From: Auanema rhodensis
Lineage: Eukaryota; Animalia; Nematoda
NCBI GenBank assembly: GCA_964057225.1
Contig: OZ059898.1
Location: forward strand, 10,230,001-10,294,000
DNA length: 64,000 bases
Direction of reading: 5' to 3'
Under the pieces are notes generated by a model. It had not been told where the DNA came from and searched no databases. It saw only the letters and a list, made by a program, of their open reading frames with translations. Below, piece after piece: positions 1-64,000 of this stretch. How positions within the stretch are numbered: position 1 is the stretch's first letter; each line of letters starts with the position of its first letter. The position numbers and the translations under genes were made by a program.

Positions 1-95
1 AAAAACAGTAAAATAAAACTGTGAAAGCGGGTAAAACTGTTGAACTAAAACAGTCTTTATAAAATATAAATGATATTTTTTTATAAAAGTGAAGT

Positions 96-166
96 TGCAT
101 CGGCCGGGAATCGAACCCGGGTCGCCCGCGTGGCACGCGAGCATTCTACCACTGAACCACCGATGC
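96..166 (-). tRNA. tRNA-Gly(GCC), variant C32G
   Basis: 71-nt cloverleaf; TGGCACGC instead of TGGCAGGC on the + strand. Confidence 0.85.
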
Positions 167-950
167 TTCGAAAATGTTAGATTGTTTCCGAAAAATTATG
201 AAAAGTCAAGTTCTACTGATTTGAAGAAAATTGTAAGTTTTAGAAAATAATTAAAAATACGTTCTCTCTACTATTAACTGATTGTCGGCTAAAATATGGT
301 AACAGTTTTTATGTAAAGTTTCCATGATTAGGATTAAACAAAAAAAAGAATTAAAAAGAAACACTTCTTGTTTACTTACTTGATTATACTACTTGAAATT
401 CCAAAAACAGTAGAATAAAATAGAGAAAGAGACGAAAAAAGTTGAACGATTTGAAGAGAATTGTGAGTTTTAGAAAAGAATTAAAGTTTAGCTTTGTCTA
501 CTATTAACTGATTATCGGCTGAAATATGGTGACAGTTTTTTTTTAAAAGTTTCCATGATTAAGATTAATCAAAGAAAAAAAAATCAAAGAGAAACACTTC
601 TTGTTTACTAATTTGATTATAACACTTGAAATTCCAACAAAAGTAAAGTAAAACTGTTAAAGCGAGTAAAACTGTTGAACAATTTGAAGACAATTGTAAG
701 TTGAAGAATAAAATTAAAGTTTAGCTCTCTCTACTATTAACTGAATGTCGGCTAAAATATGGTAACAGTTTTTATTAAAAGTTTCCATGATTAAGATTAA
801 ACAAAGAAAAAAAATCAAAGAGAAACACTTCTTGTTTACTAATTTGATTATAACACTTGAAATTCCAACAAAAGTAAAATAAAACTGTGAAAGCGGGTAA
901 AACTGTTGAACTAAAACAGTCTTTATAAAATATAAATGATATTTTTTTAT

Positions 951-954
951 AAAA
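951..954 (-). terminator. Pol III terminator (T4) of the tRNA cassette; representative, repeated in each cassette
   Basis: Minus strand reads tRNA 3' end-ACTTCAC-TTTT; T5 or longer in some copies (e.g. 34041, 57280, 59392). Confidence 0.6.
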
Positions 955-961
955 GTGAAGT

Positions 962-1032
962 TGCATCGGCCGGGAATCGAACCCGGGTCGCCCGCGTGGC
1001 AGGCGAGCATTCTACCACTGAACCACCGATGC
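962..1032 (-). tRNA. tRNA-Gly(GCC)
   Basis: GCATCGGTGGTTCAGTGGTAGAATGCTCGCCTGCCACGCGGGCGACCCGGGTTCGATTCCCGGCCGATGCA: 7-bp acceptor stem, A box, GCC anticodon, B box; no encoded CCA (array consensus). Confidence 0.96.
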
Positions 1033-1824
1033 TTCGAAAATGTTAGATTGTTTCCGAAAAATTATGAAAAGTCAAGTTCCACTGATTTGAAGAAAATTGT
1101 AAGTTTTAGAAAATAATTAAAAATAAGTTCTCTCTACTATTAACTGATTGTCGGCTAAAATATGGTAACAGTTTTTATAAAAAGTTTCCATGATTGAGAT
1201 TAAACAAAAAAAAGAATTAAAGAGAAACACTTCTTGTTTACTTACTTGATTATACTACTTGAAATTCGAAAAAAAGTAAAAAACAATTGAGAAAGCGACA
1301 TAAACAGTTGAACGATTTGAAGAGAATTGTAAGTTTAAGAAAAGATTTAAAGTTTAGCTTTGTCTACTATTAACTGATTATCGGCTAAAATAAGGTAACA
1401 GTTTTTATTGAAAGTTTCCATGATTAAGATTAAACAAAGAAAAAAATCAAAGAGAAACACTTCTTGTTTACTTACTTGATTATAATACTTGAAATTCCAA
1501 AAACAGTAAAATAAAATTGAGAAAGCGACAAAAACAGTTGAACGATTTGAAGACAATTGTAAGTTGAAGAATAAAATTAAAGTTTAGCTCTCTCTACTAT
1601 TAACTGAATGTCGGCTAAAATATGGTATCAGTTTTTATTAAAAGTTTCCATGATTAAGATTAAACAAAGAAAAAAAATCAAAGAGAAACACTTCTTGTTT
1701 ACTAATTTGATTATAACACTTGAAAATCCAACAAAAGTAAAATAAAACTGTGAAAGCGGGTAAAACTGTTGAACTAAAACAGTCTTTATAAAATATAAAT
1801 GCTATATTTTTATAAAAGTGAAGT

Positions 1825-1895
1825 TGCATCGGCCGGGAATCGAACCCGGGTCGCCCGCGTGGCAGGCGAGCATTCTACCACTGAACCACCGATGC
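1825..1895 (-). tRNA. tRNA-Gly(GCC)
   Basis: Matches array consensus. Confidence 0.95.
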
Positions 1896-2915
1896 TTCGA
1901 AAATGTTAGATTGTTTCCGAAAAATTATGAAAAGTCAAGTTCTACTGATTTGAAGAGAATTGTAAGTTTTAGAAAATAATTAAAAATTAGTTCTCTCTAC
2001 TATTAACTGATTGTCGGCTAAAATATGGTAACAGTTTTTATAAAAAGTTTCCATGATTAGGATTAAACAAAAAAAAGAATTAAAGAGAAACACTTTTTGT
2101 TTACTTATTTGATTATAATACTTTAAATTCCAAAAACAGTAGAATAAAATTGAGAAATCGACAAAAACAGTTGAACGATTTGAAGAAAATTGTAAGTTTT
2201 AGAAAATAATTAAAAATAAGTTCTCTCTACTATTAACTGATTGTCGGCTAAAATATGGTAACAGTTTTTATAAAAAGTTTCCATGATTGAGATTAAACAA
2301 AAAAAAGAATTAAAGAGAAACACTTCTTGTTTACTTACTTGATTATACTACTTGAAATTCGAAAAAAAGTAAAAAACAATTGAGAAAGCGACATAAACAG
2401 TTGAACGATTTGAAGAGAATTGTAAGTTTAAGAAAAGATTTAAAGTTTAGCTTTGTCTACTATTAACTGATTATCGGCTAAAATAAGGTAACAGTTTTTA
2501 TTGAAAGTTTCCATGATTAAGATTAAACAAAGAAAAAAATCAAAGAGAAACACTTCTTGTTTACTTACTTGATTATAATACTTGAAATTCCAAAAACAGT
2601 AAAATAAAATTGAGAAAGCGACAAAAACAGTTGAACGATTTGAAGACAATTGTAAGTTGAAGAATAAAATTAAAGTTTAGCTCTCTCTTATTAACTGAAT
2701 GTCGGCTAAAATATGGTATCAGTTTTTATTAAAAGTTTCCATGATTAAGATTAAACAAAGAAAAAAAATCAAAGAGAAACACTTCTTGTTTACTAATTTG
2801 ATTATAACACTTGAAAATCCAACAAAAGTAAAATAAAACTGTGAAAGCGGGTAAAACTGTTGAACTAAAACAGTCTTTATAAAATATAAATGCTATATTT
2901 TTATAAAAGTGAAGT

Positions 2916-34168: not shown

Positions 34169-34232
34169 TGTCGCGATAAGCGAGTGAGTTTGTATAATTT
34201 TTTTATCTTCAACAATTGTTTTATTCGTTTCT

Positions 34233-34289
<57 letters not shown>

Positions 34290-34539: not shown

Positions 34540-34542
34540 AAT

Positions 34543-34591: not shown

Positions 34592-34821
34592 ATACAACTC
34601 GAACCAAGCGTGTTTGAGCAAAAAACATACTTAATAAAAATCGTCGCGATCATAAGTCCACGTCAAGTCACACCAAACAGACTTGAACAATAAGCAAACT
34701 CTGAAATTAGAAACAGAGGTTTCAATTCCCTTACGTTCACATATACTGTGATCACCAAACAAACAAAGAAAAAAGAAAACAAAAAAGGAATATAAGCATT
34801 ATTCCTACATCTACAACAAAA

Positions 34822-42740: not shown

Positions 42741-43036
42741 AAGCATAAGAGAAGAATTTCTTGTGGAGATAAAATTTAAAATTAAAAATTGAAATAATAA
42801 TGAAACAAAAGAAAAAGAAAGCATTATGTACGAATATAACCATTGTAATAAAACAATATCATTGTTTTTCTTTCTTTTCAATTTATGGTAGTATCAAGTT
42901 TCTTTTATCCAACTCAGTTACATAACACATAACCTTTTGTACAGGCTCTAAAATTCATTGTATCTGTAACAAGATAACCTAAACACATCATTGTACAATG
43001 AACTAATAGATGTTAATCAGCGTTTAAAGTCCAGAT

Positions 43037-43549
43037 GTGAACATGTATATAAGGATGCAGATCATGTCTTTCCTATATTCCATGAAAATGGAAGATATTG
43101 TCTCGAATATAATTGAGAATGCTTCCTTTGAGGAAGAGCTCAAAAAATATTCCCATCTACCTAACACTGCTGCCAATCTGAGGCAACTAATTGTGCTTGA
43201 AAAGAGGCTCTACGAGCACCTAGCTAGCGCGGTGAACCATCTATCCGAACGACTGGACAATATTCAACATTCGTTAAATCTGAAACTAGACAATTTGACC
43301 ATTCAGACTGCTCCTAAAGCTTCATGTGTATTCTGCAATAAACCGACAGCTGATGGGCACCGTACTGCGGCCTGTCCGGTTTATCCTTCCTCACCGGAAC
43401 GCACTCTCCGTCTTCATGAACTGGGGTTATGCATCAGATGTTTGAATCAAAAACATCCAGCGATATGCGAGGTATCCTGCTATAGATGTAAGGCGGATAC
43501 GCATCATGGAGTGGTTTGTGGAGATATAAAACGTAAAAGACCTTTGTAG
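43037..43549 (+). CDS. Accessory 3' ORF: helical/coiled-coil region + three Cys/His zinc knuckles + basic C-terminus (start uncertain; first ATG at 43043)
   Basis: 170 open codons with higher GC than the flanks; CVFCNKPTADGHRTAAC, CIRCLNQKHPAIC, CYRCKADTHHGVVC, KRKRPL; stop 30 nt before the 3' LTR. Confidence 0.75.
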   Translation: MNMYIRMQIMSFLYSMKMEDIVSNIIENASFEEELKKYSHLPNTAANLRQLIVLEKRLYEHLASAVNHLSERLDNIQHSLNLKLDNLTIQTAPKASCVFCNKPTADGHRTAACPVYPSSPERTLRLHELGLCIRCLNQKHPAICEVSCYRCKADTHHGVVCGDIKRKRPL

Positions 43550-43571
43550 GCCTTCTTCTCATTCCCGCATT

Positions 43572-43579
43572 GCCGGGAG
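43572..43579 (+). promoter_or_regulatory. Putative short polypurine tract (plus-strand primer)
   Basis: GCCGGGAG abuts the 3' LTR start; short and imperfect, assigned by position. Confidence 0.5.
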
Positions 43580-43643
43580 TGTCGCGATAAGCGAGTGAGT
43601 TTGTATAATTTTTTTATCTTCAACAATTGTTTTATTCGTTTCT

Positions 43644-43692
<49 letters not shown>

Positions 43693-43942
43693 TTCTTCTT
43701 TCTTCTAACTTCCTAAGTAATTTTTATCCGTACCACATGTTGTGTTATACATGTGGCATGACTAACTCTTTGTTTCAGGCTGACGACCGCCCACGAGAAG
43801 AGATCAGTCTTACATTTTCAACGTTCGCAGTCAGTGATTTTATTCCGTGCTTGTCTTGTTAATTCATCAATAAACCCTTTTCTACATATTCAATTTGTGT
43901 TTTACTTCCAACCATACTATACACTTGTGGTATATCGCCACA
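43580..43942 (+). repeat. 3' LTR (363 bp)
   Basis: Identical by eye to the 5' LTR except (CT)21 instead of (CT)25, which accounts for the 8-bp length difference. Confidence 0.96.
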
Positions 43943-44685
43943 ATTTAAAGAGAATTGTAAGTTTTAGAAAAGAATTAAAGTTCAGCTATCTCTACTATTA
44001 ACTGATTATCGGCTAAAATAAGGTAACAGTTTTTATTAAAAGTTTCCATGATTAAGATTACACAAAGAAAAAAAATCAAAGAGAAACACTTCTTGTTTAC
44101 TTATTTGATTATAATACTTGAAATTCCAAAAACAGTAGAATAAAATAGAGAAAGCGACGAAAAAAGTTGAACGATTTGAAGAGAATTGTAAGTTTTAGAA
44201 AAGAATTAAAGTTTAGCTTTGTCTACTATTAACTGATTATCGGCTGAAATATGGTGACAGTTTTTTTTTAAAAGTTTCCATGATTAAGATTAATCAAAGA
44301 AAAAAAATCAAAGAGAAACACTTCTTGTTTACTAATTTGATTATAACACTTGAAATTCCAACAAAAGTAAAGTAAAACTGTTAAAGCGAGTAAAACTGTT
44401 GAACAATTTGAAGACAATTGTAAGTTGAAGAATAAAATTAAAGTTTAGCTCTCTCTACTATTAACTGAATGTCGGCTAAAATATGGTAACAGTTTTTATT
44501 AAAAGTTTCCAGGATTAAGATTAAACAAAGAAAAAAAATCAAAGAGAAACACTTCTTGTTTACTAATTTGATTATAACACTTGAAATTCCAACAAATGTA
44601 AAATAAAACTGTGAAAGCGGGTAAAACTGTTGAACTAAAACAGTCTTTATAAAATATAAATGATATTTTTTTATAAAATTGAAGT

Positions 44686-45783: not shown

Positions 45784-45854
45784 TGCATCGGCCGGGAATC
45801 GAACCCGGGTCGCACGCGTGGCAGGCGAGCATTCTACCACTGAACCACCGATGC
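45784..45854 (-). tRNA. tRNA-Gly(GCC), variant G42T (anticodon stem)
   Basis: GTCGCACGCG instead of GTCGCCCGCG on +. Confidence 0.85.
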
Positions 45855-46650
45855 TTCGAAAATGTTAGATTGTTTCCGAAAAATTATGAAAAGTCAAGTT
45901 CTACTGATTTGAAGAGAATTGTAAGTTTTAGAAAAGAATTAAAGTTCAGCTATCTCTACTATTAACTGATTATCGGCTAAAATAAGGTAACAGTTTTTAT
46001 TAAAAGTTTCCATGATTAAGATTACACAAAGAAAAAAAATCAAAGAGAAACACTTCTTGTTTACTTATTTGATTATAATACTTGAAATTCCAAAAACAGT
46101 AGAATAAAATAGAGAAAGCGACGAAAAAAGTTGAACGATTTGAAGAGAATTGTAAGTTTTAGAAAAGAATTAAAGTTTAGCTTTGTCTACTATTAACTGA
46201 TTATCGGCTGAAATATGGTGACAGTTTTTTTTTAAAAGTTTCCATGATTAAGATTAGTCAAAGAAAAAAAAATCAAAGAGAAACACTTCTTGTTTACTAA
46301 TTTGATTATAACACTTGAAATTACAACAAAAGTAAAGTAAAACTGTTAAAGCGAGTAAAACTGTTGAACAATTTGAAGACAATTGTAAGTTGAAGAATAA
46401 AATTAAAGTTTAGCTCTCTCTACTATTAACTGAATGTCGGCTAAAATATGGTAACAGTTTTTATTAAAAGTTTCCAGGATTAAGATTAAACAAAGAAAAA
46501 AAATCAAAGAGAAACACTTCTTGTTTACTAATTTGATTATAACACTTGAAATTCCAACAAATGTAAAATAAAACTGTGAAAGCGGGTAAAACTGTTGAAC
46601 TAAAACAGTCTTTATAAAATATAAATGATATTTTTTTATAAAAGTGAAGT

Positions 46651-46721
46651 TGCATCGGCCGGGAATCGAACCCGGGTCGCCCGCGTGGCAGGCGAGCATT
46701 CTACCACTGAACCACCGATGC
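46651..46721 (-). tRNA. tRNA-Gly(GCC)
   Basis: Matches array consensus. Confidence 0.95.
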
Positions 46722-47516
46722 TTCGAAAATGTTAGATTGTTTCCGAAAAATTATGAAAAGTCAAGTTCTACTGATTTGAAGAGAATTGTAAGTTTTAGAA
46801 AATAATTAAAAATAAGTTCTCTCTACTATTAACTGATTGTCGGCTAAAATATGGTAACAGTTTTTATAAAAAGTTTCCATGATTAGGATTAAACAAAAAA
46901 AAGAATTAAAAAGAAACACTTCTTGTTTACTTACTTGATTATACTACTTGAAATTCGAAAAAAAGTAAAAAACAATTGAGAAAGCGACATAAACAGTTGA
47001 ACGATTTGAAGAGAATTGTAAGTTCAAGAAAAGAATTAAAGTTTAGCTTTGTCTACTATTAACTGATTATCGGCTGAAATATGGTGACAGTTTTTTATTA
47101 AAAGTTTCCATGATTAAGATTAAACAAAGAAGAAAAAATCAAAGAGAGACACTTCTTGTTTACTTATTTGATTATAATACTTGAAATTCCAAAAACAGTA
47201 GAATAAAATAGAGAAAGCGACGAAAAAAGTTGAACGATTTGAAGAGAATTGTAAGTTTAAGAAAAGATTTAAAGTTAAGCTTTGTCTACTATTAACTGAT
47301 TATCGGCTAAAATATGGTAACAGTTTTTATTAAAAGTTTCCAGGATTAAGATTAAACAAAGAAAAAAAATCAAAGAAAAACACTTCTTGTTTACTAATTT
47401 GATTATAACACTTGAAATTCCAACAAAAGTAAAATAAAACTGTGAAAGCGGGTAAAACTGTTGAACTAAAACAGTCTTTATAAAATATAAATTATATTTT
47501 TTTATAAAAGTGAAGT

Positions 47517-47587
47517 TGCATCGGCCGGGAATCGAAGCCGGGTTGCCCGCGTGGCAGGCGAGCATTCTACCACTGAACCACCGATGC
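47517..47587 (-). tRNA. tRNA-Gly(GCC), B-box variant G53C + variable-loop G>A; possible pseudogene
   Basis: TCGAAGCCGGGTTG instead of TCGAACCCGGGTCG on +. Confidence 0.75.
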
Positions 47588-48382
47588 TTCGAAAATGTTA
47601 GATTGTTTCCGAAAAATTATGAAAAGTCAAGTTCTACTGATTTGAAGAGAATTGTAAGTTTTAGAAAATAATTAAAAATAAGTTCTCTCTACTATTAACT
47701 GATTGTCGGCTAAAATATGGTAACAGTTTTTATAAAAAGTTTCCATGATTAGGATTAAACAAAAAAAAGAATTAAAAAGAAACACTTCTTGTTTACTTAC
47801 TTGATTATACTACTTGAAATTCGAAAAAAAGTAAAAAACAATTGAGAAAGCGACATAAACAGTTGAACGATTTGAAGAGAATTGTAAGTTCAAGAAAAGA
47901 ATTAAAGTTTAGCTTTGTCTACTATTAACTGATTATCGGCTGAAATATGGTGACAGTTTTTTATTAAAAGTTTCCATGATTAAGATTAAACAAAGAAGAA
48001 AAAATCAAAGAGAGACACTTCTTGTTCACTTATTTGATTATAATACTTGAAATTCCAAAAACAGTAGAATAAAATAGAGAAAGCGACGAAAAAAGTTGAA
48101 CGATTTGAAGAGAATTGTAAGTTTAAGAAAAGATTTAAAGTTAAGCTTTGTCTACTATTAACTGATTATCGGCTAAAATATGGTAACAGTTTTTATTAAA
48201 AGTTTCCAGGATTAAGATTAAACAAAGAAAAAAAATCAAAGAGAAACACTTCTTGTTTACTAATTTGATTATAACACTTGAAATTCCAACAAAAGTAAAA
48301 TAAAACTGTGAAAGCGGGTAAAACTGTTGAACTAAAACAGTCTTTATAAAATATAAATGATATTTTTTTATAAAAGTGAAGT

Positions 48383-48453
48383 TGCATCGGCCGGGAATCG
48401 AAGCCGGGTTGCCCGCGTGGCAGGCGAGCATTCTACCACTGAACCACCGATGC
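48383..48453 (-). tRNA. tRNA-Gly(GCC), B-box variant G53C + variable-loop G>A; possible pseudogene
   Basis: TCGAAGCCGGGTTG on +. Confidence 0.75.
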
Positions 48454-49481
48454 TTCGAAAATGTTAGATTGTTTCCGAAAAATTATGAAAAGTCAAGTTC
48501 TACTGATTTGAAGAGAATTGTAAGTTTTAGAAAATAATTAAAAATAAGTTCTCTCTACTATTAACTGATTGTCGGCTAAAATATGGTAACAGTTTTTATT
48601 GAAAGTTTCCATGATTAGGATTAAACAAAAAAAAGAATTAAAAAGAAACACTTCTTGTTTACTTACTTGATTATACTACTTGAAATTCGAAAAAAAGTAA
48701 AAAACAATTGAGAAAGCGACATAAACAGTTGAACGATTTGAAGAGAATTGTAAGTTCAAGAAAAGAATTAAAGTTTAGCTTTGTCTACTATTAACTGATT
48801 ATCGGCTGAAATATGGTGACAGTTTTTTATTAAAAGTTTCCATGATTAAGATTAAACAAAGAAGAAAAAATCAAAGAGAGACACTTCTTGTTTACTTATT
48901 TGATTATAATACTTGAAATTCCAAAAACAGTAGAATAAAATAGAGAAAGCGACGAAAAAAGTTGAACGATTTGAAGAGAATTGTAAGTTTAAGAAAAGAT
49001 TTAAAGTTAAGCTTTGTCTACTATTAACTGATTATCGGCTGAAATATGGTGACAGTTTTTTATTAAAAGTTTCCATGATTAAGATTAAACAAAGAAAAAA
49101 AAATCAAAGAGAAACACTTCTTGTTTACTTATTTGATTATAACACTTGAAATTCCAACAAAAGTGAAGTAAAACTGTTAAAGCGAGTAAAACTGTTGAAC
49201 GATTTCAAGACAATTGTAAGTTGAAGAAAAAAATTAAAGTTTAGCTCTCTCTACTATTAACTGAATGTCGGCTGAAATAAGGTAACAGTTTTTATTAAAA
49301 GTTTCCATGATTTAGATTAAACAAAGAAAAAAAATCAAAGAGAAACACTTCTTGTTTACTAATTCGATTATAACACTTGAAAATCCAACAAAAGTAAAAT
49401 AAAACTGTGAAAGCGGGTAAAACTGTTGAACTAAAACAGTCTTTATAAAATATAAATGATATTTTTTTATAAAAGTGAAGT

Positions 49482-49552
49482 TGCATCGGCCGGGAATCGA
49501 ACCCGGGTCGCACGCGTGGCAGGCGAGCATTCTACCACTGAACCACCGATGC
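49482..49552 (-). tRNA. tRNA-Gly(GCC), variant G42T
   Basis: GTCGCACGCG on +. Confidence 0.85.
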
Positions 49553-50358
49553 TTCGAAAATGTTAGATTGTTTCCGAAAAATTATGAAAAGTCAAGTTCT
49601 ACTGATTTGAAGAGAATTGTAAGTTTTAGAAAATAATTAAAAATTAGTTCTCTCTACTATTAACTGATTGTCGGCTAAAATATGGTAACAGTTTTTATAA
49701 AAAGTTTCCATGATTAGGATTAAACAAAAGAAGAATTAAAGAGAAACACTTTTTGTTTACTTATTTGATTATAATACTTGAAATTCCAAAAACAGTAGAA
49801 TAAAATTGAGAAATCGACAAAAACAGTTGAACGATTTGAAGAGAATTGAGAGAGAAGAGAAGTAAGTTGAAGAAAAAAATTAAAGTTTAGCTCTCTCTAC
49901 TATTAACTGAATGTCGGCTGAAATAAGGTAACAGTTTTTATTAAAAGTTTCCATGATTTAGATTAAACAAAGAAAAAAAATCAAAGAGAAACACTTCTTG
50001 TTTACTAATTCGATTATAACACTTGAAATTCCAAAAACAGTAGAATAAAATAGAGAAAGCGACGAAAAAAGTTGAACGATTTGAAGAGAATTGTAAGTTT
50101 AAGAAAAGATTTAAAGTTAAGCTTTGTCTACTATTAACTGATTATCGGCTAAAATATGGTAACAGTTTTTATTAAAAGTTTCCAGGATTAAGATTAAACA
50201 AAGAAAAAAAATCAAAGAGAAACACTTCTTGTTTACTAATTTGATTATAACACTTGAAATTCCAACAAAAGTAAAATAAAACTGTGAAAGCGGGTAAAAC
50301 TGTTGAACTAAAACAGTCTTTATAAAATATAAATGATATTTTTTTATAAAAGTGAAGT

Positions 50359-50429
50359 TGCATCGGCCGGGAATCGAAGCCGGGTTGCCCGCGTGGCAGG
50401 CGAGCATTCTACCACTGAACCACCGATGT
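50359..50429 (-). tRNA. tRNA-Gly(GCC), G53C + variable-loop G>A + G1A; probable pseudogene
   Basis: TCGAAGCCGGGTTG and CCGATGT on +. Confidence 0.7.
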
Positions 50430-51456
50430 TTCGAAAATGTTAGATTGTTTCCGAAAAATTATGAAAAGTCAAGTTCTACTGATTTGAAGAGAATTGTAAG
50501 TTTTAGAAAATAATTAAAAATAAGTTCTCTCTACTATTAACTGATTGTCGGCTAAAATATGGTAACAGTTTTTATAAAAAGTTTCCATGATTAGGATTAA
50601 ACAAAAAAAAGAATTAAAAAGAAACACTTCTTGTTTACTTACTTGATTATACTACTTGAAATTGGAAAAAAAGTAAAAAACAATTGAGAAAGCGACATAA
50701 ACAGTTGAACGATTTGAAGAGAATTGTAAGTTCAAGAAAAGAATTAAAGTTTAGCTTTGTCTACTATTAACTGATTATCGGCTGAAATATGGTGACAGTT
50801 TTTTATTAAAAGTTTCCATGATTAAGATTAAACAAAGAAGAAAAAATCAAAGAGAGACACTTCTTGTTTACTTATTTGATTATAATACTTGAAATTCCAA
50901 AAACAGTAGAATAAAATAGAGAAAGCGACGAAAAAAGTTGAACGATTTGAAGAGAATTGTAAGTTTAAGAAAAGATTTAAAGTTAAGCTTTGTCTACTAT
51001 TAACTGATTATCGGCTGAAATATGGTGACAGTTTTTTATTAAAAGTTTCCATGATTAAGATTAAACAAAGAAAAAAAATCAAAGAGAAACACTTCTTGTT
51101 TACTTATTTGATTATAACACTTGAAATTCCAACAAAAGTAAAGTAAAACTGTTAAAGCGAGTAAAACTGTTGAACGATTTCAAGACAATTGTAAGTTGAA
51201 GAAAAAAATTAAAGTTTAGCTCTCTCTACTATTAACTGAATGTCGGCTGAAATAAGGTAACAGTTTTTATTAAAAGTTTCCATGATTTCGATTAAACAAA
51301 GAAAAAAAATCAAAGAGAAACACTTCTTGTTTACTAATTCGATTATAACACTTGAAAATCCAACAAAAGTAAAATAAAACTGTGAAAGCGGGTAAAACTG
51401 TTGAACTAAAACAGTCTTTATAAAATATAAATGATATTTTTTTATAAAAGTGAAGT

Positions 51457-51527
51457 TGCATCGGCCGGGAATCGAACCCGGGTCGCACGCGTGGCAGGCG
51501 AGCATTCTACCACTGAACCACCGATGC
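51457..51527 (-). tRNA. tRNA-Gly(GCC), variant G42T
   Basis: GTCGCACGCG on +. Confidence 0.85.
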
Positions 51528-52551
51528 TTCGAAAATGTTAGATTGTTTCCGAAAAATTATGAAAAGTCAAGTTCTACTGATTTGAAGAGAATTGTAAGTT
51601 TTAGAAAATGATTAAAAATTAGTTCTCTCTACTATTAACTGATTGTCGGCTAAAATATGGTAACAGTTTTTATAAAAAGTTTCCATGATTAGGATTAAAC
51701 AAAAGAAGAATTAAAGAGAAACACTTTTTGTTTACTTATTTGATTATAATACTTGAAATTCCAAAAACAGTAGAATAAAATTGAGAAATCGACAAAAACA
51801 GTTGAACGATTTGAAGAGAATTGTAAGTTTTAGAAAAGAATTAAAGTTCAGCTATCTCTACTATTAACTGACTATCGGCTAGAATAAGGTAACAGTTTTT
51901 ATTGAAAGTTTCCATGATTAAGATTGAACAAAAAAAAAAATTAGAGAGAAACACTTCTTGTTTACTTACTTGATTATAATACTTGAAATTCCAAAAACAG
52001 TAAAATAAAATTGAGAAAGCGACAAAAACAGTTGAACGATTTGAAGACAATTGTAAGTTTAAGAAAAGAATTAAAGTTTAGCTTTGTCTACTATTAACTG
52101 ATTATCGGCTGAAATATGGTGACAGTTTTTTTTTAAAAGTTTCCATGATTAAGATTAAACAAAGAAAAAAAAATCAAAGAGAAACACTTCTTGTTTACTA
52201 ATTCGATTATAACACTTGAAATTCCAACAAAAGTAAAGTAAAACTGTTAAAGCGAGTAAAACTGTTGAACAATTTGAAGACAATTGTAAGTTGAAAAAAA
52301 AAATTAAAGTTTAGCTCTCTCTACTATTAACTGAATGTCGGCTAAAATATGATAACAGTTTTTATTAAAAGTTTCCATGATTAAGATTAAACAAAGAAAA
52401 AAAATCAAAGAGAAACACTTCTTGTTTACTAATTTGATTATAACACTTGAAATTCCAACAAAAGTAAAATAAAACTGTGAAAGCGGGTAAAACTGTTGAA
52501 CTAAAACAGTCTTTATAAAATATAAATGATATTTTTTTATAAAAGTGAAGT

Positions 52552-52622
52552 TGCATCGGCCGGGAATCGAACCCGGGTCGCCCGCGTGGCAGGCGAGCAT
52601 TCTACCACTGAACCACCGATGC
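52552..52622 (-). tRNA. tRNA-Gly(GCC)
   Basis: Matches array consensus. Confidence 0.95.
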
Positions 52623-53417
52623 TTCGAAAATGTTAGATTGTTTCCGAAAAATTATGAAAAGTCAAGTTCTACTGATTTGAAGAGAATTGTAAGTTTTAGA
52701 AAATAATTAAAAATAAGTTCTCTCTACTATTAACTGATTGTCGGCTAAAATATGGTAACAGTTTTTATAAAAAGTTTCCATGATTAGGATTAAACAAAAA
52801 AAAGAATTAAAAAGAAACACTTCTTGTTTACTTACTTGATTATACTACTTGAAATTCGAAAAAAAGTAAAAAACAATTGAGAAAGCGACATAAACAGTTG
52901 AACGATTTGAAGAGAATTGTAAGTTCAAGAAAAGAATTAAAGTTTAGCTTTGTCTACTATTAACTGATTATCGGCTGAAATATGGTGACAGTTTTTTATT
53001 AAAAGTTTCCATGATTAAGATTAAACAAAGAAGAAAAAATCAAAGAGAGACACTTCTTGTTTACTTATTTGATTATAATACTTGAAATTCCAAAAACAGT
53101 AGAATAAAATAGAGAAAGCGACGAAAAAAGTTGAACGATTTGAAGAGAATTGTAAGTTTAAGAAAAGATTTAAAGTTAAGCTTTGTCTACTATTAACTGA
53201 TTATCGGCTAAAATATGGTAACAGTTTTTATTAAAAGTTTCCAGGATTAAGATTAAACAAAGAAAAAAAATCAAAGAGAAACACTTCTTGTTTACTAATT
53301 TGATTATAACACTTGAAATTCCAACAAAAGTAAAATAAAACTGTGAAAGCGGGTAAAACTGTTGAACTAAAACAGTCTTTATAAAATATAAATGATATTT
53401 TTTTATAAAAGTGAAGT

Positions 53418-53488
53418 TGCATCGGCCGGGAATCGAAGCCGGGTTGCCCGCGTGGCAGGCGAGCATTCTACCACTGAACCACCGATGC
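53418..53488 (-). tRNA. tRNA-Gly(GCC), B-box variant G53C + variable-loop G>A; possible pseudogene
   Basis: TCGAAGCCGGGTTG on +. Confidence 0.75.
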
Positions 53489-57279: not shown

Positions 57280-57350
57280 TGCATCGGCCGGGAATCGAAC
57301 CCGGGTTGCCCGCGTGGCAGGCGAGCATTCTACCACTGAACCACCGATGC
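57280..57350 (-). tRNA. tRNA-Gly(GCC), variable-loop G>A; 7-bp 5'-flank deletion
   Basis: CCCGGGTTGCC on +; followed by TTGTTAG. Confidence 0.88.
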
Positions 57351-57659
57351 TTGTTAGATTGTTTCCGAAAAATTATGAAAAGTCAAGTTCTACTGATTTG
57401 AAGAGAATTGTAAGTTTTAGAAAAGAATTAAAGTTCAGCTATCTCTACTATTAACTGATTATCGGCTGAAATATGGTGACAGTTTTTTTTTAAAAGTTTC
57501 CATGATTAAGATTAATCAAAGAAAAAAAAATCAAAGAGAAACACTTCTTGTTTACTAATTTGATTATAACACTTGAAATTCCAACAAAAGTAAAGTAAAA
57601 CTGTTGAACTAAAACAGTCTTTATAAAATATAAATGATATTTTTTTATAAAAGTGAAGT

Positions 57660-57730
57660 TGCATCGGCCGGGAATCGAACCCGGGTCGCCCGCGTGGCAG
57701 GCGAGCATTCTACCACTGAACCACCGATGC
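57660..57730 (-). tRNA. tRNA-Gly(GCC)
   Basis: Matches array consensus. Confidence 0.95.
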
Positions 57731-58758
57731 TTCGAAAATGTTAGATTGTTTCCGAAAAATTATGAAAAGTCAAGTTCTACTGATTTGAAGAGAATTGTAA
57801 GTTTTAGAAAATAATTAAAAATAAGTTCTCTCTACTATTAACTGATTGTCGGCTAAAATATGGTAACAGTTTTTATAAAAAGTTTCCATGATTAGGATTA
57901 AACAAAAAAAAGAATTAAAAAGAAACACTTCTTGTTTACTTACTTGATTATACTACTTGAAATTCGAAAAAAAGTAAAAAACAATTGAGAAAGCGACATA
58001 AACAGTTGAACGATTTGAAGAGAATTGTAAGTTCAAGAAAAGAATTAAAATTTAGCTTTGTCTACTATTAACTGATTATCGGCTGAAATATGGTGACAGT
58101 TTTTTATTAAAAGTTTCCATGATTAAGATTAAACAAAGAAGAAAAAATCAAAGAGAGACACTTCTTGTTTACTTATTTGATTATAATACTTGAAATTCCA
58201 AAAACAGTAGAATAAAATAGAGAAAGCGACGAAAAAAGATGAACGATTTGAAGAGAATTGTAAGTTTAAGAAAAGATTTAAAGTTTAGCTTTGTCTACTA
58301 TTAACTGATTATTGGCTGAAATATGGTGACAGTTTTTTATTAAAAGTTTCCATGATTAAGATTAAACAAAGAAAAAAAAATCAAAGAGAAACACTTCTTG
58401 TTTACTTATTTGATTATAACACTTGAAATTCCAACAAAAGTAAAGTAAAACTGTTAAAGCGAGTAAAACTGTTGAACGATTTCAAGACAATTGTAAGTTG
58501 AAGAAAAAAATTAAAGTTTAGCTCTCTCTACTATTAACTGAATGTCGGCTGAAATAAGGTAACAGTTTTTATTAAAAGTTTCCAAGATTTAGATTAAACA
58601 AAGAAAAAAAATCAAAGAGAAACACTTCTTGTTTACTAATTCGATTATAACACTTGAAAATCCAACAAAAGTAAAATAAAACTGTGAAAGCGGGTAAAAC
58701 TGTTGAACTAAAACAGTCTTTATAAAATATAAATGATATTTTTTTATAAAAGTGAAGT

Positions 58759-58829
58759 TGCATCGGCCGGGAATCGAACCCGGGTCGCCCGCGTGGCAGG
58801 CGAGCATTCTACCACTGAACCACCGATGC
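58759..58829 (-). tRNA. tRNA-Gly(GCC)
   Basis: Matches array consensus. Confidence 0.95.
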
Positions 58830-59391
58830 TTCGAAAATGTTAGATTGTTTCCGAAAAATTATGAAAAGTCAAGTTCTACTGATTTGAAGAGAATTGTAAG
58901 TTTTAGAAAATAATTAAAAATTAGTTCTCTCTACTATTAACTGATTGTCGGCTAAAATATGGTAACAGTTTTTATAAAAAGTTTCCATGATTAGGATTAA
59001 ACAAAAGAAGAATTAAAGAGAAACACTTTTTGTTTACTTATTTGATTATAATACTTGAAATTCCAAAAACAGTAGAATAAAATTGAGAAATCGACAAAAA
59101 CAGTTGAACGATTTGAAGAGAATTGTAAGTTTTAGAAAATAATTAAAAATTAGTTCTCTCTACTATTAACTGATTATCGGCTAAAATATGGTAACAGTTT
59201 TTATTAAAAGTTTCCATGATTAAGATTGAACAAAGAAAAAAAAATTAAAGAGAAACACTTCTTGTTTACTAATTTGATTATAACACTTGAAAATCCAACA
59301 AAAGTAAAATAAAACTGTAAAAGCGAGTAAAACTGTTGAAATAAAACAGTTTTTATTAAATATAAATGATATTTTTTTATAAAAATGAAGT

Positions 59392-59462
59392 TGCATCGGC
59401 CGGGAATCGAACCCGGGTCGCCCGCGTGGCAGGCGAGCATTCTACCACTGAACCACCGATGC
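59392..59462 (-). tRNA. tRNA-Gly(GCC)
   Basis: Consensus gene; 7-bp 5'-flank deletion. Confidence 0.94.
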
Positions 59463-60484
59463 TTGTTAGATTGTTTCCGAAAAATTATGAAAAGTCAAGT
59501 TCTACTGATTTGAAGAGAATTGTAAGTTTTAGAAAAGAATTAAAGTTCAGCTATCTCTACTATTAACTGATTATCGGCTAAAATAAGGTAACAGTTTTTA
59601 TTAAAAGTTTCCATGATTAAGATTAAACAAAGAAAAAAAATCAAAGAGAAACACTTCTTGTTTACTTATTTGATTATAATACTTGAAATTCCAAAAACAG
59701 TAGAATAAAATAGAGAAAGCGACGAAAAAAGTTGAACGATTTGAAGAGAATTGTAAGTTTTAGAAAAGAATTAAAGTTTAGCTTTGTCTACTATTAACTG
59801 ATTATCGGCTGAAATATGGTGACAGTTTTTTATTAAAAGTTTCCATGATTAAGATTAAACAAAGAAGAAAAAATCAAAGAGAGACACTTCTTGTTTACTT
59901 ATTTGATTATAATACTTGAAATTCCAAAAACAGTAGAATAAAATAGAGAAAGCGACGAAAAAAGATGAACGATTTGAAGAGAATTGTAAGTTTAAGAAAA
60001 GATTTAAAGTTTAGCTTTGTCTACTATTAACTGATTATCGGCTGAAATATGGTGACAGTTTTTTATTAAAAGTTTCCATGATTAAGATTAAACAAAGAAA
60101 AAAAAATCAAAGAGAAACACTTCTTGTTTACTTATTTGATTATAACACTTGAAATTCCAACAAAAGTAAAGTAAAACTGTTAAAGCGAGTAAAACTGTTG
60201 AACGATTTCAAGACAATTGTAAGTTGAAGAAAAAAATTAAAGTTTAGCTCTCTCTACTATTAACTGAATGTCGGCTGAAATAAGGTAACAGTTTTTATTA
60301 AAAGTTTCCAAGATTTAGATTAAACAAAGAAAAAAAATCAAAGAGAAACACTTCTTGTTTACTAATTCGATTATAACACTTGAAAATCCAACAAAAGTAA
60401 AATAAAACTGTGAAAGCGGGTAAAACTGTTGAACTAAAACAGTCTTTATAAAATATAAATGATATTTTTTTATAAAAGTGAAGT

Positions 60485-60555
60485 TGCATCGGCCGGGAAT
60501 CGAACCCGGGTCGCCCGCGTGGCAGGCGAGCATTCTACCACTGAACCACCGATGC
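60485..60555 (-). tRNA. tRNA-Gly(GCC)
   Basis: Matches array consensus. Confidence 0.95.
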
Positions 60556-61348
60556 TTCGAAAATGTTAGATTGTTTCCGAAAAATTATGAAAAGTCAAGT
60601 TCTACTGATTTGAAGAGAATTGTAAGTTTTAGAAAATAATTAAAAATTAGTTCTCTCTACTATTAACTGATTGTCGGCTAAAATATGGTAACAGTTTTTA
60701 TAAAAAGTTTCCATGATTAGGATTAAACAAAAGAAGAATTAAAGAGAAACACTTTTTGTTTACTTATTTGATTATAATACTTGAAATTCCAAAAACAGTA
60801 GAATAAAATTGAGAAATCGACAAAAACAGTTGAACAATTTGAAGACAATTGTAAGTTGAAGAAAAAAATTAAAGTTTAGCTCTCTCTACTATTTAATGAT
60901 TGTCGGCTAAAATATGGTAACAGTTTTTATTAAAAGTTTCCATGATTAAGATTAAACAAAGAAAAAAAATCAAAGAGAAACACTTCTTGTTTACTTATTT
61001 GATTATAATACTTGAAATTCCAAAAACAGTAAAATAAAATAGAGAAAGCGACGAAAAAAGTTGAACAATTTGAAGACAATTGTAAGTTGAAGAAAAAAAT
61101 TAAAGTTTAGCTCTCTCTACTATTTAATGATTGTCGGCTAAAATATGGTAACAGTTTTTATTAAAAGTTTCCATGATTAAGATTGAACAAAGAAAAAAAA
61201 ATCAAAGAGAAACACTTCTTGTTTACTAATTTGATTATAACACTTGAAAATCCAACAAAAGTAAAATAAAACTGTAAAAGCGAGTAAAACTGTTGAAATA
61301 AAACAGTTTTTATTAAATATAAATGATATTTTTTTATAAAAATGAAGT

Positions 61349-61419
61349 TGCATCGGCCGGGAATCGAACCCGGGTCGCCCGCGTGGCAGGCGAGCATTCT
61401 ACCACTGAACCACCGATGC
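61349..61419 (-). tRNA. tRNA-Gly(GCC)
   Basis: Consensus gene; 7-bp 5'-flank deletion. Confidence 0.94.
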
Positions 61420-62208
61420 TTGTTAGATTGTTTCCGAAAAATTATGAAAAGTCAAGTTCTACTGATTTGAAGAGAATTGTAAGTTTTAGAAAAGAATTAA
61501 AGTTCAGCTATCTCTACTATTAACTGATTATCGGCTAAAATAAGGTAACAGTTTTTATTAAAAGTTTCCATGATTAAGATTAAACAAAGAAAAAAAATCA
61601 AAGAGAAACACTTCTTGTTTACTTATTTGATTATAATACTTGAAATTCGAAAAAAAGTAAAAAACAATTGAGAAAGCGACATAAACAGTTGAACGATTTG
61701 AAGAGAATTGTAAGTTTTAGAAAAGAATTGAAGTTTAGCTTTGTCTACTATTAACTGATTATCGGCTGAAATATGGTGACAGTTTTTTTTTAAAAGTTTC
61801 CATGATTAAGATTAATCAAAGAAAAAAAAATCAAAGAGAAACACTTCTTGTTTACTAATTTGATTATAACACTTGAAATTCCAACAAAAGTAAAGTAAAA
61901 CTGTTAAAGCGAGTAAAACTGTTGAACAATTTGAAGACAATTGTAAGTTGAAGAATAAAATTAAAGTTTAGCTCTCTCTACTATTAACTGAATGTCGGCT
62001 AAAATATGGTAACAGTTTTTATTAAAAGTTTCCATGATTAAGATTAAACAAAGAAAAAAAATCAAAGAGAAACACTTCTTGTTTACTAATTTGATTATAA
62101 CACTTGAAAATCCAACAAAAGTAAAATAAAACTGTAAAAGCGAGTAAAACTGTTGAAATAAAACAGTTTTTATTAAATATAAATGATATTTTTTTATAAA
62201 AATGAAGT

Positions 62209-62279
62209 TGCATCGGCCGGGAATCGAACCCGGGTCGCCCGCGTGGCAGGCGAGCATTCTACCACTGAACCACCGATGC
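62209..62279 (-). tRNA. tRNA-Gly(GCC)
   Basis: Consensus gene; 7-bp 5'-flank deletion. Confidence 0.94.
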
Positions 62280-63067
62280 TTGTTAGATTGTTTCCGAAAA
62301 ATTATGAAAAGTCAAGTTCTACTGATTTGAAGAAAATTGTAAGTTTTAGAAAATAATTAAAAATAAGTTCTCTCTACTATTAACTGATTGTCGGCTAAAA
62401 TATGGTAACAGTTTTCATGAAAAGTTTCCATGATTAGGATTAAACAAAAAAAAGAATTAAAAAGAAACACTTTTTGTTTACTTATTTGATTATAATACTT
62501 GAAATTCCAAAAACAGTAGAATAAAATTGAGAAATCGACAAAAACAGTTGAACAATTTGAAGACAATTGTAAGTTGAAGAAAAAAATTAAAGTTTAGCTC
62601 TCTCTACTATTTAATGATTGTCGGCTGAAATATGGTGACAGTTTTTTATTAAAAGTTTCCATGATTAAGATTAAACAAAGAAAAAAAATCAAAGAGAAAC
62701 ACTTCTTATTTACTTACTTGATTATAATACTTGAAATTCCAAAAACAGTAAAATAAAATAGAGAAAGCGACGAAAAAAGTTGAACAATTTGAAGACAATT
62801 GTAAGTTGAAGAAAAAAATTAAAGTTTAGCTCTCTCTACTATTTAATGATTGTCGGCTAAAATATGGTAACAGTTTTTATTAAAAGTTTCCATGATTAAG
62901 ATTGAACAAAGAAAAAAAAATCAAAGAGAAACACTTCTTGTTTACTAATTTGATTATAACACTTGAAAATCCAACAAAAGTAAAATAAAACTGTAAAAGC
63001 GAGTAAAACTGTTGAAATAAAACAGTTTTTATTAAATATAAATGATATTTTTTTATAAAAATGAAGT

Positions 63068-63138
63068 TGCATCGGCCGGGAATCGAACCCGGGTCGCCCG
63101 CGTGGCAGGCGAGCATTCTACCACTGAACCACCGATGC
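63068..63138 (-). tRNA. tRNA-Gly(GCC)
   Basis: Consensus gene; 7-bp 5'-flank deletion. Confidence 0.94.
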
Positions 63139-63926
63139 TTGTTAGATTGTTTCCGAAAAATTATGAAAAGTCAAGTTCTACTGATTTGAAGAGAATTGTA
63201 AGTTTTAGAAAAGAATTAAAGTTCAGCTATCTCTACTATTAACTGATTATCGGCTAAAATAAGGTAACAGTTTTTATTAAAAGTTTCCATGATTAAGATT
63301 AAACAAAGAAAAAAAATCAAAGAGAAACACTTCTTGTTTACTTATTTGATTATAATACTTGAAATTCGAAAAAAAGTAAAAAACAATTGAGAAAGCGACA
63401 TAAACAGTTGAACGATTTGAAGAGAATTGTAAGTTTTAGAAAAGAATTGAAGTTTAGCTTTGTCTACTATTAACTGATTATCGGCTGAAATATGGTGACA
63501 GTTTTTTTTTAAAAGTTTCCATGATTAAGATTAATCAAAGAAAAAAAATCAAAGAGAAACACTTCTTGTTTACTAATTTGATTATAACACTTGAAATTCC
63601 AACAAAAGTAAAGTAAAACTGTTAAAGCGAGTAAAACTGTTGAAGAATTTGAAGACAATTGTAAGTTGAAGAATAAAATTAAAGTTTAGCTCTCTCTACT
63701 ATTAACTGAATGTCGGCTAAAATATGGTAACAGTTTTTATTAAAAGTTTCCATGATTAAGATTAAACAAAGAAAAAAAATCAAAGAGAAACACTTCTTGT
63801 TTACTAATTTGATTATAACACTTGAAAATCCAACAAAAGTAAAATAAAACTGTAAAAGCGAGTAAAACTGTTGAAATAAAACAGTTTTTATTAAATATAA
63901 ATGATATTTTTTTATAAAAATGAAGT

Positions 63927-63997
63927 TGCATCGGCCGGGAATCGAACCCGGGTCGCCCGCGTGGCAGGCGAGCATTCTACCACTGAACCACCGATGC
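63927..63997 (-). tRNA. tRNA-Gly(GCC)
   Basis: Consensus gene; flank begins TTG as in the deletion haplotype (window ends). Confidence 0.94.
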
Positions 63998-64000
63998 TTG

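Follow-up and report, generated by a model that had tools for sequence, protein, structure and literature searches.

The window, that is, the whole 64-kb stretch of invertebrate-type DNA analysed here, is filled by a tandem array of tRNA-Gly(GCC) genes. ARAGORN and the Rfam family RF00005 detected the same 58 genes in it, each 71 nt long and all on the minus strand. RF00005 scores range from 52.2 to 66.6 bits over the 58 copies (gathering score 29), ARAGORN places the anticodon GCC at its canonical position in 58/58 copies, and the cloverleaf of the consensus tRNA has a folding energy of -26.5 kcal/mol. Forty-five of the 58 copies are identical, the other 13 carrying one to three substitutions. 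RF00005 was the only Rfam family matched in the array, so the gene is not a 5S rRNA gene. The units follow each other head to tail in a single orientation with one gene per unit, and a retrotransposon (34169-43942) is the only interruption. The first gene occupies positions 96-166 and the last 63927-63997; the array is thus open at both ends of the window, and flanking unique sequence is absent from the window. With the retrotransposon subtracted, the array measures 54,221 bp and contains about 1.07 genes per kb. Its two parts are:

1-34168, minus strand: left array part, 35 tRNA-Gly(GCC) units including 4 variants; continues beyond the window start
43948-64000, minus strand: right array part, 23 units including 9 variants; continues beyond the window end

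Each repeat unit is composed of a near-invariant cassette of 172 bp and of n position-specific monomers of 231 bp. No homology between cassette and monomer was detectable. A representative unit contains:

962-1032, minus strand: consensus tRNA-Gly(GCC), 71 nt, with A box (nt 8-19), anticodon (nt 33-35) and B box GGTTCGATTCC (nt 50-60)
1033-1083, minus strand: upstream leader, 51 bp, near-invariant (pi 0.005); TATA-like ATAATTTTT at -33 to -25 (1057-1065)
912-961, minus strand: cassette trailer, 50 bp; TTTT terminator at 951-954, starting 7 nt past the 3' end of the gene
1084-1774, minus strand: example of a spacer, three AT-rich monomers of about 231 bp

The elements expected of a Pol III gene are kept throughout. 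A run of at least four T at +6/+7 is found in 58/58 copies, the A-box region is identical in all 58, and 54 of the 58 have a perfect B box. Sixty B-box matches stand against 2.4 expected from shuffles, which excludes chance. Perfect B boxes recur about every 0.95 kb over at least 54 kb. A tRNA-derived SINE or a tRNA pseudogene repeat was rejected as an identification, the tRNA being full-length and high-scoring and followed by a terminator 7 nt past its 3' end.

TRF resolves every spacer into tandem monomers of 228-233 bp. The distance between starts of consecutive genes equals 172.99 + 230.53 n bp, where n is 1-6 (residual SD 2.7 bp, 55 units). Spacing classes, computed after excision of the 9774-bp retrotransposon together with its 5-bp target duplication, comprise 1 unit with n = 1, 5 with n = 2, 29 with n = 3, 17 with n = 4, 4 with n = 5 (one irregular unit of 1279 bp included) and 1 with n = 6. 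Two units are irregular:

32833-34040, minus strand: irregular 1279-bp unit, partial monomers and a 64-bp local duplication (33643-33772)
57351-57659, minus strand: shortest spacer, in the 380-bp unit, one truncated monomer

The 193 monomers of the array fall into position-specific types A-H, whose consensuses diverge by 3-16%, and the GC content of the spacers is 28%. Monomer A comes first in 49 units, and C, E, D or H comes last, a higher-order repeat organisation as in satellite DNA. No relative was found in the sequence collections searched. Several types are mosaics: G combines D (5') with B (3'), E is D continued by C, and H is E continued by C. The mosaic types show in-register unequal exchange; such exchange, or conversion, between subrepeats evidently adds and removes whole monomers, and the spacing is quantised because monomers are gained or lost as wholes. 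Four pairs of units, their members 1-5 units apart, are 100% identical, the longest self-matches in the array extend over 2-3.9 kb at 97.4-98.4% identity, and subfamilies of units are arranged in an ordered local structure. Judged from these sequences, duplication at the level of units, together with conversion, clearly keeps the units alike.

The array had been described in the first-pass annotation as 58 co-oriented full genes, 45 of them matching the consensus, embedded in a satellite with quantised spacing and open at both ends. Gene finding by ARAGORN and RF00005 and the positions of the outermost genes bear this out, and the structural description proved right. The periods given there (633, 864, 1095, 1326 and 1555 bp) and the spacers of 1-6 monomers agree with the spacing fit and with TRF. 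Its extent of about 54 kb corresponds to the array length without the retrotransposon; the gap of 10.6 kb between the genes at 34041 and 44686 was missing from it.

This gap is the insertion of the retrotransposon, which comprises the following features:

34169-43942, plus strand: BEL/Pao LTR retrotransposon with an env-like ORF, 9774 bp, inserted where leader and monomer meet, 57 bp upstream of the tRNA gene at 34041-34111
34164-34168 (left, ATTTG, plus strand) and 43943-43947 (right, ATTTA): target-site duplication, 5 bp
34169-34539, plus strand: 5' LTR, 371 bp, TG...CA ends, (TC)n run inside
34543-34606, plus strand: primer-binding region, TGG followed by antisense tRNA-Gly(GCC)
34822-38949, plus strand: ORF 1, 1375 aa, gag-like DUF1759, RVT_1 and Peptidase_A17
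38961-39668, plus strand: ORF 2, 235 aa, zinc-binding domain of the integrase and a portion of its core
39762-42740, plus strand: ORF 3, 992 aa, integrase C-terminal DUF5641 fused to env-like Phlebovirus_G2 and Phlebo_G2_C
43580-43942, plus strand: 3' LTR, 363 bp, the same as the 5' LTR save for 8 bp fewer in (TC)n

Assignment to BEL/Pao follows from the TG..CA LTRs, the target-site duplication, the primer-binding site and the DUF1759, RVT_1, Peptidase_A17, integrase and DUF5641 domains. ORF 2 lies in a frame different from that of ORF 1 and ends at an in-frame stop within the integrase. The insertion is young, and its excision in silico restores a unit of 866 bp. The leader of the element would pair with almost the whole tRNA-Gly(GCC), the primer-binding region being an antisense copy of nearly full length: the primer-binding region matches the 3' 46 nt of the tRNA plus CCA at 47 of 49 positions and continues into a degenerate D-arm part.

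The 13 mutated copies contain no compensating changes. Variants make up 9 of the 23 copies on the right-hand side of the retrotransposon, and mutations affect 7 of 10 copies in a decayed sub-domain at 45.7-53.5 kb. Four copies share G44A and G51C, which break the closing T-stem pair and the B box:

47517-47587, 48383-48453, 50359-50429 (also G1A) and 53418-53488, minus strand: G44A+G51C copies, all in units without the first A monomer

By its sequence, this B-box-defective variant is evidently one that has been amplified to four copies. The variants (U41, U2, A44/C51) can serve as natural barcodes, making expression of defined parts of the array testable by tRNA sequencing.

Diversity is distributed very unevenly along the unit. 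Over the same 51 units, pi is 0.005 in the leader and 0.0085 in the tRNA, whereas it reaches 0.036 in the trailer and, in the adjacent monomer A, which is of the same type in all, 0.038; leader and tRNA are thus 4-8 times less diverse than this monomer. Segregating sites number 9/122 in leader plus tRNA and 48/231 in monomer A (p=0.0012, 51 units). The difference is also present within 3-monomer units only (5/122 vs 135/693, p=6e-6) and within 4-monomer units only (3/122 vs 166/924, p=6.5e-7). The consensus is matched by 44 of 56 copies of the tRNA window, and by a median of 10 and a maximum of 24 copies in the 339 monomer windows of 71 nt. The most conserved window extends from -39 to +32.

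These results suggest that the locus is a maintained array and not a dead satellite, since gene and promoter are far more uniform than the spacer. It had been proposed earlier that tRNA positions as variable as comparable flank positions would make the array an inert satellite; the low diversity of leader and gene speaks against this at the level of sequence. We therefore regard it as probable that we are dealing with a real, concertedly evolving tandem array of complete Pol III-type tRNA-Gly(GCC) genes, organised in a 5S-like manner and supplying tRNA-Gly(GCC) dosage. The diversity valley leads us to infer purifying selection, which would act on the output of the array and not on each copy, keeping the promoter-proximal leader and the gene near-invariant; defective copies would occasionally drift and even amplify. 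The array would supply a high dosage of tRNA-Gly(GCC) genes for decoding of GGC and GGU, and could do so constitutively or in cells with high glycine demand.

Another explanation, which we hold to be possible yet rather unlikely, is an essentially silent heterochromatic satellite whose higher-order repeat happens to include a tRNA gene. Satellite dynamics, not tRNA supply, would have amplified it, and it would be at most an epigenetically locked reserve of the kind seen in the Arabidopsis clusters. In that case the cassette would be uniform because a conversion or recombination hot spot at the tDNA homogenised it, or because it arose recently. A local hot spot of conversion, or a sweep that carried the cassette through not long ago, could account for the low-diversity valley in place of selection for tRNA output. 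Spacers of 28% GC with higher-order repeat organisation, the tolerated insertion of a retrotransposon, the amplification of defective copies along with their units and the sub-domain with 7 of 10 copies mutated are all consistent with silence, and clustered tDNAs of Arabidopsis are silent despite intact cis-elements (PMC7544208). However, the diversity minimum coincides with the stretch that a Pol III pre-initiation complex is expected to cover, about -60 through the gene's end. Part of this minimum is the AT-rich non-coding leader, which could not have been made uniform by ectopic conversion with dispersed tRNA genes as donors. Moreover, the terminator is kept in 58/58 copies, and 78% of tRNA copies are free of mutations, compared with about 18% (median) for a neighbouring monomer stretch of equal length.

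A more far-reaching proposal, which we consider speculative and improbable, is an epigenetically gated "tRNA factory", turned on where cells produce structural proteins very rich in glycine (of the silk, cuticle or collagen type) and serving also as a source of primer tRNA and a preferred landing zone for the env-bearing BEL/Pao element. If this were true, a host dosage array and a retrovirus-like element would be coupled via one tRNA.

Very improbable, in our view, is a mainly architectural role, in which a dense series of tDNAs bound by TFIIIC/TFIIIB would serve as boundary, as nuclear-positioning element or as pericentromeric domain, with the tRNA itself of secondary importance. The regular supply of perfect B boxes, about one per 0.95 kb over at least 54 kb, and the peak of conservation over leader and A box, i.e. 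over factor-binding sites, would suit such a role, and tDNA repeats have been proposed as boundary elements, e.g. the human 1q23.3 tRNA VNTR (PMC4041453). On the other hand, the anticodon arm, the acceptor stem and the terminator are conserved too, none of which is needed for factor binding alone, and a search of the monomers revealed no extra B-box sites, so the idea of a TFIIIC chromatin domain gains nothing from the sequence. Nor does the window offer any clue to position, be it centromere, telomere or flanking genes. That unit copy number or order is an assembly artefact, a shorter array having been inflated or mis-joined, is highly improbable: four 100% identical unit pairs and many units more than 99% alike do make the region hard to assemble, but most units differ in private substitutions and monomer number, the longest self-matches reach just 2-3.9 kb at 97.4-98.4% identity, unit subfamilies are locally ordered, and the unique retrotransposon has a clean 5-bp target duplication and leaves an 866-bp unit when excised.

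Three readings had been offered side by side in the first-pass annotation, with no choice made among them: an array serving gene dosage, capture of a tRNA gene by a satellite, and a TFIIIC domain. They are supported in part, the discriminator applied at sequence level favouring a maintained gene array. Capture by a satellite fits only by half, the 172-bp cassette having no detectable homology to the monomer, and the sequence adds nothing in favour of the TFIIIC domain.

In animals, tRNA genes are generally described as scattered or as grouped in small clusters of mixed composition. An array of one isodecoder on the scale of a satellite, its sequence pointing to constraint on gene and upstream promoter, would offer a clean natural setting in which to study how the dosage of tRNA genes is set and buffered, what a Pol III gene does within satellite-like chromatin (whether it is active, gated by tissue or, like the Arabidopsis clusters, silenced) and how the effects of selection and of concerted evolution are divided over the repeat unit. 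Should the array be silent, it would represent a well-resolved case of a satellite with an intact gene.

The reading as a maintained gene array invites comparison with 5S rRNA arrays. Xenopus oocyte-type 5S DNA has an AT-rich spacer with a variable number of short subrepeats. Common to 5S arrays and the present one are head-to-tail units with one small Pol III gene each, an internal promoter and a T-run terminator, an AT-rich spacer that varies by whole subrepeats, and a gene much more uniform than its spacer, by concerted evolution and selection, with occasional pseudogenes. The differences are a tRNA gene with a type 2 promoter here as against type 1 in 5S, and satellite-sized, position-specific subrepeats of 231 bp as against a repeat of the 15-bp type.

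Nearly all tRNA genes of Entamoeba lie in arrays, of which there are 25 unit types; a unit has up to five different tRNAs, some units include 5S, and the intergenic repeats are microsatellite-like STRs (PMC2652664). Tandem units bearing tRNA genes, variable-number intergenic repeats and near-uniformity of units within an array are shared with our locus (PMC2652664), which differs in its one isoacceptor, one gene per unit and 231-bp monomers. The tRNA sequence and the presence of a BEL/Pao element point to an animal as the host of our array. Identification as an Entamoeba-type tRNA/STR array was rejected, the spacers being 231-bp monomers and a single isoacceptor being present.

Arabidopsis possesses Ser/Tyr/Tyr (SYY), Pro and Cys tDNA clusters (PMC2886086, PMC7544208, PMC12308677, PMC10701932). 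They resemble our array in consisting of tens of tDNAs in tandem, which tandem duplication has multiplied within repeat-like surroundings and whose Pol III cis-elements are intact. Clustered tDNAs such as SYY can meet a demand for particular amino acids in specific cells (PMC12308677) and satellite-like AT-rich tandem clusters can be silenced (PMC7544208), a precedent for silencing and cell-type-specific reactivation tied to amino-acid demand. The Arabidopsis clusters differ in being plant clusters with three genes per SYY unit, and a satellite subrepeat with quantised spacing is not reported for them in the available text of these papers.

The human 1q23.3 VNTR is likewise a copy-number-variable tandem repeat with tRNA genes in an animal genome; its unit is 7.3 kb long, GC-rich and CTCF-binding, contains several tRNA genes and is present 9-43 times per allele (PMC4041453), whereas the units here are 0.4-1.6 kb long, AT-rich and single-gene. 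Finally, the array resembles higher-order-repeat satellite DNA in its AT-rich monomers of about 231 bp, position-specific types, mosaics from unequal exchange and local runs of identical units. Unlike in such satellites, each unit here carries a complete, constrained Pol III cassette whose sequence is unrelated to the monomer.

Run over the whole window, ARAGORN found 58 tRNA-Gly(GCC) genes, without exception on the minus strand, from 96-166 through 63927-63997. The Rfam tRNA model, whose gathering score is 29, recovered the identical 58 genes at 52.2-66.6 bits. Forty-five copies are identical; the other 13 carry one to three substitutions and make up eight variant forms. The genes stand at a density of 1.07 per kb across 54.2 kb with a GC content of 28%, and the array is open at both window ends. 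Every spacer consists of tandem monomers of 228-233 bp, as detected by TRF. The gene-to-gene distances were analysed after excision of one transposon:

34169-43942, + strand, LTR retrotransposon of 9774 bp, BEL/Pao with an env-like gene

The 57 distances then follow 172.99 + 230.53 n bp (residual SD, 2.7 bp), n being the number of monomers in the unit. Two units are off register, one of 380 bp by 24 bp and one of 1279 bp by 47 bp.

Units in each spacing class of the array
n = 1: 1 unit
n = 2: 5 units
n = 3: 29 units
n = 4: 17 units
n = 5: 4 units, one of them the irregular 1279-bp unit
n = 6: 1 unit

The first-pass annotation had described 58 co-oriented genes, 45 of them consensus, in an array of about 54 kb running past both window ends, with spacers of one to six whole monomers of about 231 bp; the two gene searches, the TRF monomers and the linear fit bear out this description in each respect. 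The array is thus a very regular series of complete tRNA-Gly(GCC) genes whose spacing is quantised by the 231-bp monomer.

Read in the tRNA sense (minus strand), each unit opens with a nearly invariant 51-bp leader. It holds ATAATTTTT at -33 to -25, a position which we take to be that of the TATA-like TFIIIB element in insect-type tRNA promoters. Next comes the 71-nt gene, whose sequence is presumably an invertebrate-type Gly(GCC); all 58 copies agree throughout the A-box region, and 54 of 58 have a perfect B box, GGTTCGATTCC. In the 50-bp trailer, the first run of at least four T starts 6-7 nt past the gene 3´ end, again in 58 of 58 copies, and n monomers of about 231 bp complete the unit. 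The 193 monomers cluster into position-specific types. Type A stands directly after the trailer in 49 units, the second monomer is mostly B or D, and the last is C, E, D or H, so that formulas such as ADC, ABC, ABH, ABD, ABFE and ABGC (monomers in order after the trailer) recur. Consensus sequences of the types diverge by 3-16%.

Insertion of the tRNA gene into a monomer was ruled out, because alignments of leader, trailer and the two joined flanks to the monomer are no better than those of shuffled sequences; judged by these alignments, the 172-bp cassette of leader, gene and trailer is not a modified monomer. Likewise, derivation of the monomers from tRNA, SINE or another known RNA was rejected, as the Rfam scan gave no match outside the tRNA genes even at E<=1. 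A recurrent ORF of 96-98 amino acids is spurious: it starts inside the tRNA, occurs in some units only and has no Pfam match.

The monomer consensus contains eight runs of at least four T on the tRNA-sense strand versus two on the opposite strand. Any Pol III read-through would therefore be expected to halt quickly, and the spacer T runs could serve as back-up termination. Strand asymmetry is strong in every monomer (for example 1084-1774), the tRNA-sense strand being T-rich, and the AT skew of the plus strand is about +0.15 across the whole array. A short inverted repeat, ACTGTT...AACAGT, spans the junction of trailer and first monomer (912-925 region of each unit). Within the monomer, the AACAGTTTTAC / AAACTGTT motif repeats in both orientations and could be a candidate protein-binding or recombination motif.

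Next, per-site diversity was compared along the unit, as the first-pass annotation had proposed for tRNA and monomer positions. An alignment of +/-290 bp around 56 genes gave the lowest diversity for leader (0.0046) and tRNA (0.0082), with 0.039 for the trailer and 0.044 and 0.062 for the first and last monomers. Low diversity thus forms a valley from about -60 to +60 that covers the gene and its promoter-proximal leader. Among 3-monomer units, segregating sites number 5/122 in leader plus tRNA versus 135/693 in the monomers (p=6e-6), and among 4-monomer units 3/122 versus 166/924 (p=6.5e-7). The difference persists under a control restricted to the adjacent, same-type monomer A of the same 51 units, with pi of 0.005 (leader) and 0.0085 (tRNA) versus 0.038 and with 9/122 segregating sites in leader plus tRNA versus 48/231 (p=0.0012). 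As an empirical null, copies matching the consensus were counted in 339 windows of 71 nt placed entirely inside monomers: the maximum was 24 and the median 10, versus 44 of 56 for the tRNA window. The most conserved window overall is -39 to +32, from the TATA-like region to the A box. Since GC and CpG content within the unit are highest in the tRNA, the comparison would be conservative if anything.

We consider it reasonably probable, from these sequence patterns, that the stretch is a gene array. Its genes would be transcribed by Pol III, and purifying selection on tRNA output (dosage) would keep leader and gene uniform. The main competing explanation, a largely silent satellite, draws its principal support from the defective copies. 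No tRNA substitution is compensated and the majority disrupt a stem pair (G6A, G1A, G42A and G41T, the last at a U-G pair). G51C, which abolishes both the T-stem closing pair and the B box, occurs in four copies (47517, 48383, 50359 and 53418). The four units all lack the first A monomer; three are 99.8-99.9% identical to one another and the 50359 unit about 95% to those, so a dead copy has been amplified along with its unit. To the right of the transposon, 9 of 23 copies are variant, versus 4 of 35 to the left (p=0.023). In a decayed sub-domain (45784-53488), 7 of 10 tRNA copies are mutated and two unit subfamilies interleave, ABGC with G41T, which marks three such units, and BGC/BLE with G44A plus G51C, where the B box is killed. 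Near the right end, five copies (57280, 59392, 61349, 62209, 63068), with 63927 as a probable sixth, have in common a 7-bp deletion at -1 to -7, which brings the TATA-like element 7 bp nearer to the gene and gives units of 859-860 bp versus 866 bp (57280-63997). However, the first-pass annotation had tied an inert satellite to tRNA positions as variable as the flanks, and at sequence level leader and tRNA vary far less. The silent satellite is, in our judgement, unlikely, and the variant pattern is what selection on the array's total output, rather than on individual copies, would be expected to produce. For a human 7.3-kb tRNA VNTR, a role as boundary element has been proposed (PMC4041453); for the present array, an architectural role, such as the TFIIIC chromatin domain considered in the first-pass annotation, appears very improbable.

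The monomers also record how the array has changed. Type G is a mosaic with a D-like 5´ half and a B-like 3´ half; types E (D-like, then C-like) and H (E-like, then C-like) are mosaics too. Such mosaics are, by their composition, the expected footprint of in-register unequal crossing-over or conversion between monomers, and such exchange accounts for spacer length shifting in steps of a whole monomer. Identity reaches 100% in four pairs of units lying 1-5 positions apart and exceeds 99% among many units, so homogenisation of the array is recent. Judged by these patterns, both unequal exchange and recent homogenisation have shaped the array. In the irregular 1279-bp unit adjoining the transposon, a 64-bp local duplication (33643-33772, 98% identical) represents an out-of-register event, unlike the in-register exchanges elsewhere. 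The longest self-matches within the array reach just 2-3.9 kb at 97.4-98.4% identity, so short and diverged that the array is a patchwork instead of a plain repetition, and this makes an assembly artefact scarcely credible.

Both LTRs of the retrotransposon interrupting the array (371 and 363 bp) have TG...CA ends. Their sole difference is 8 bp in a (TC)n run; the insertion is thus very young. A 5-bp target duplication, ATTTG/ATTTA, lies at 34164-34168 and 43943-43947. The element sits exactly where leader meets monomer, 57 bp upstream of the tRNA gene 34041-34111 and in divergent orientation, and excision gives back an 866-bp unit, the commonest class. Its position recalls retroelements targeted to Pol III genes, although one insertion cannot show targeting.

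The proteins were searched ORF by ORF, without read-through of stops, and gave the Pfam domains DUF1759 (gag-like), RVT_1, Peptidase_A17, Integrase_H2C2, rve, DUF5641, Phlebovirus_G2 and Phlebo_G2_C. By these domains, the element is a BEL/Pao retrotransposon bearing a phlebovirus-type fusion glycoprotein, its phlebovirus-G2-like env being fused to the integrase C-terminal DUF5641 within a single ORF. To our knowledge, BEL/Pao elements occur in non-mammalian animals only. A word-based protein search found scattered gag-pol relatives of at most 29% identity (sand fly, fish, bryozoan, moth, mosquito) and a single relative of the env part, at 26%; one protein relative, also within 29% identity, has the same DUF5641+G2 architecture. 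The pol region is broken by a frame change at about 38934-38949, between the RT/protease and integrase ORFs, and an in-frame stop (39666-39668) lies inside the integrase core, although the LTRs are identical but for the (TC)n run. The copy may be non-autonomous, or the split may combine a programmed frameshift with a single nonsense change.

The primer-binding region (34543-34606, + strand) begins 3 bases past the 5´ LTR with TGG, followed over 46 nt by the complement of the tRNA-Gly(GCC) 3´ part. It matches the array tRNA plus CCA at 47 of 49 positions, CGAC variable loop included, and a degenerate D-arm match follows. Such regions usually measure about 18 nt and this one is far longer; together, the two matches give the element an antisense copy of the mature tRNA that is almost full-length. 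This might be a fossil of primer read-through copying, or an adaptation. By the extent of the match, the element is primed by the same tRNA species that the array encodes.

Neither the cassette flanks nor the monomer had a relative among the metagenome, prokaryotic-genome and viral contigs searched, and an exact scan of metagenome contigs with the invariant leader gave no match. A pattern scan with the 3´ 41 nt of the tRNA found five small metagenome contigs and one MAG contig, and no match among viral contigs. By BLAST, the matching contigs share the tRNA alone, without leader, trailer or monomer; on this evidence they come from other eukaryotes that have this tRNA variant too. Two of these small, unrelated metagenome contigs (L001:1-713 and L004:589-1496) hold two to three identical copies of the variant, 360-840 bp apart and with other flanks, so other eukaryotes also have small homogeneous tRNA-Gly clusters.

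In a survey of 2010, Entamoeba was the only known source of tandem tRNA repeats (PMC2888827); in the Entamoeba arrays, variable-number STRs lie between the genes and function is unclear (PMC2652664). In Arabidopsis, one report describes tandem Ser/Tyr/Tyr, Pro and Cys clusters that keep their cis-elements and are silenced by DNA methylation (PMC7544208), and another describes the SYY cluster as reactivated in root-cap cells, supporting a Ser/Tyr/Pro-rich glycoprotein (PMC12308677). A grasshopper satellite DNA paper was dropped as precedent, its tRNA-Gly being mitochondrial only. Our literature search found neither a description of a tRNA-Gly(GCC)/231-bp satellite array nor the sequence string of the tRNA variant. 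By mechanism, 5S rRNA gene arrays whose spacers contain subrepeats are presumably the closest analogue. The A. rhodensis array belongs, as a variant, with the known tRNA tandem arrays and with Pol III gene arrays that evolve in concert.
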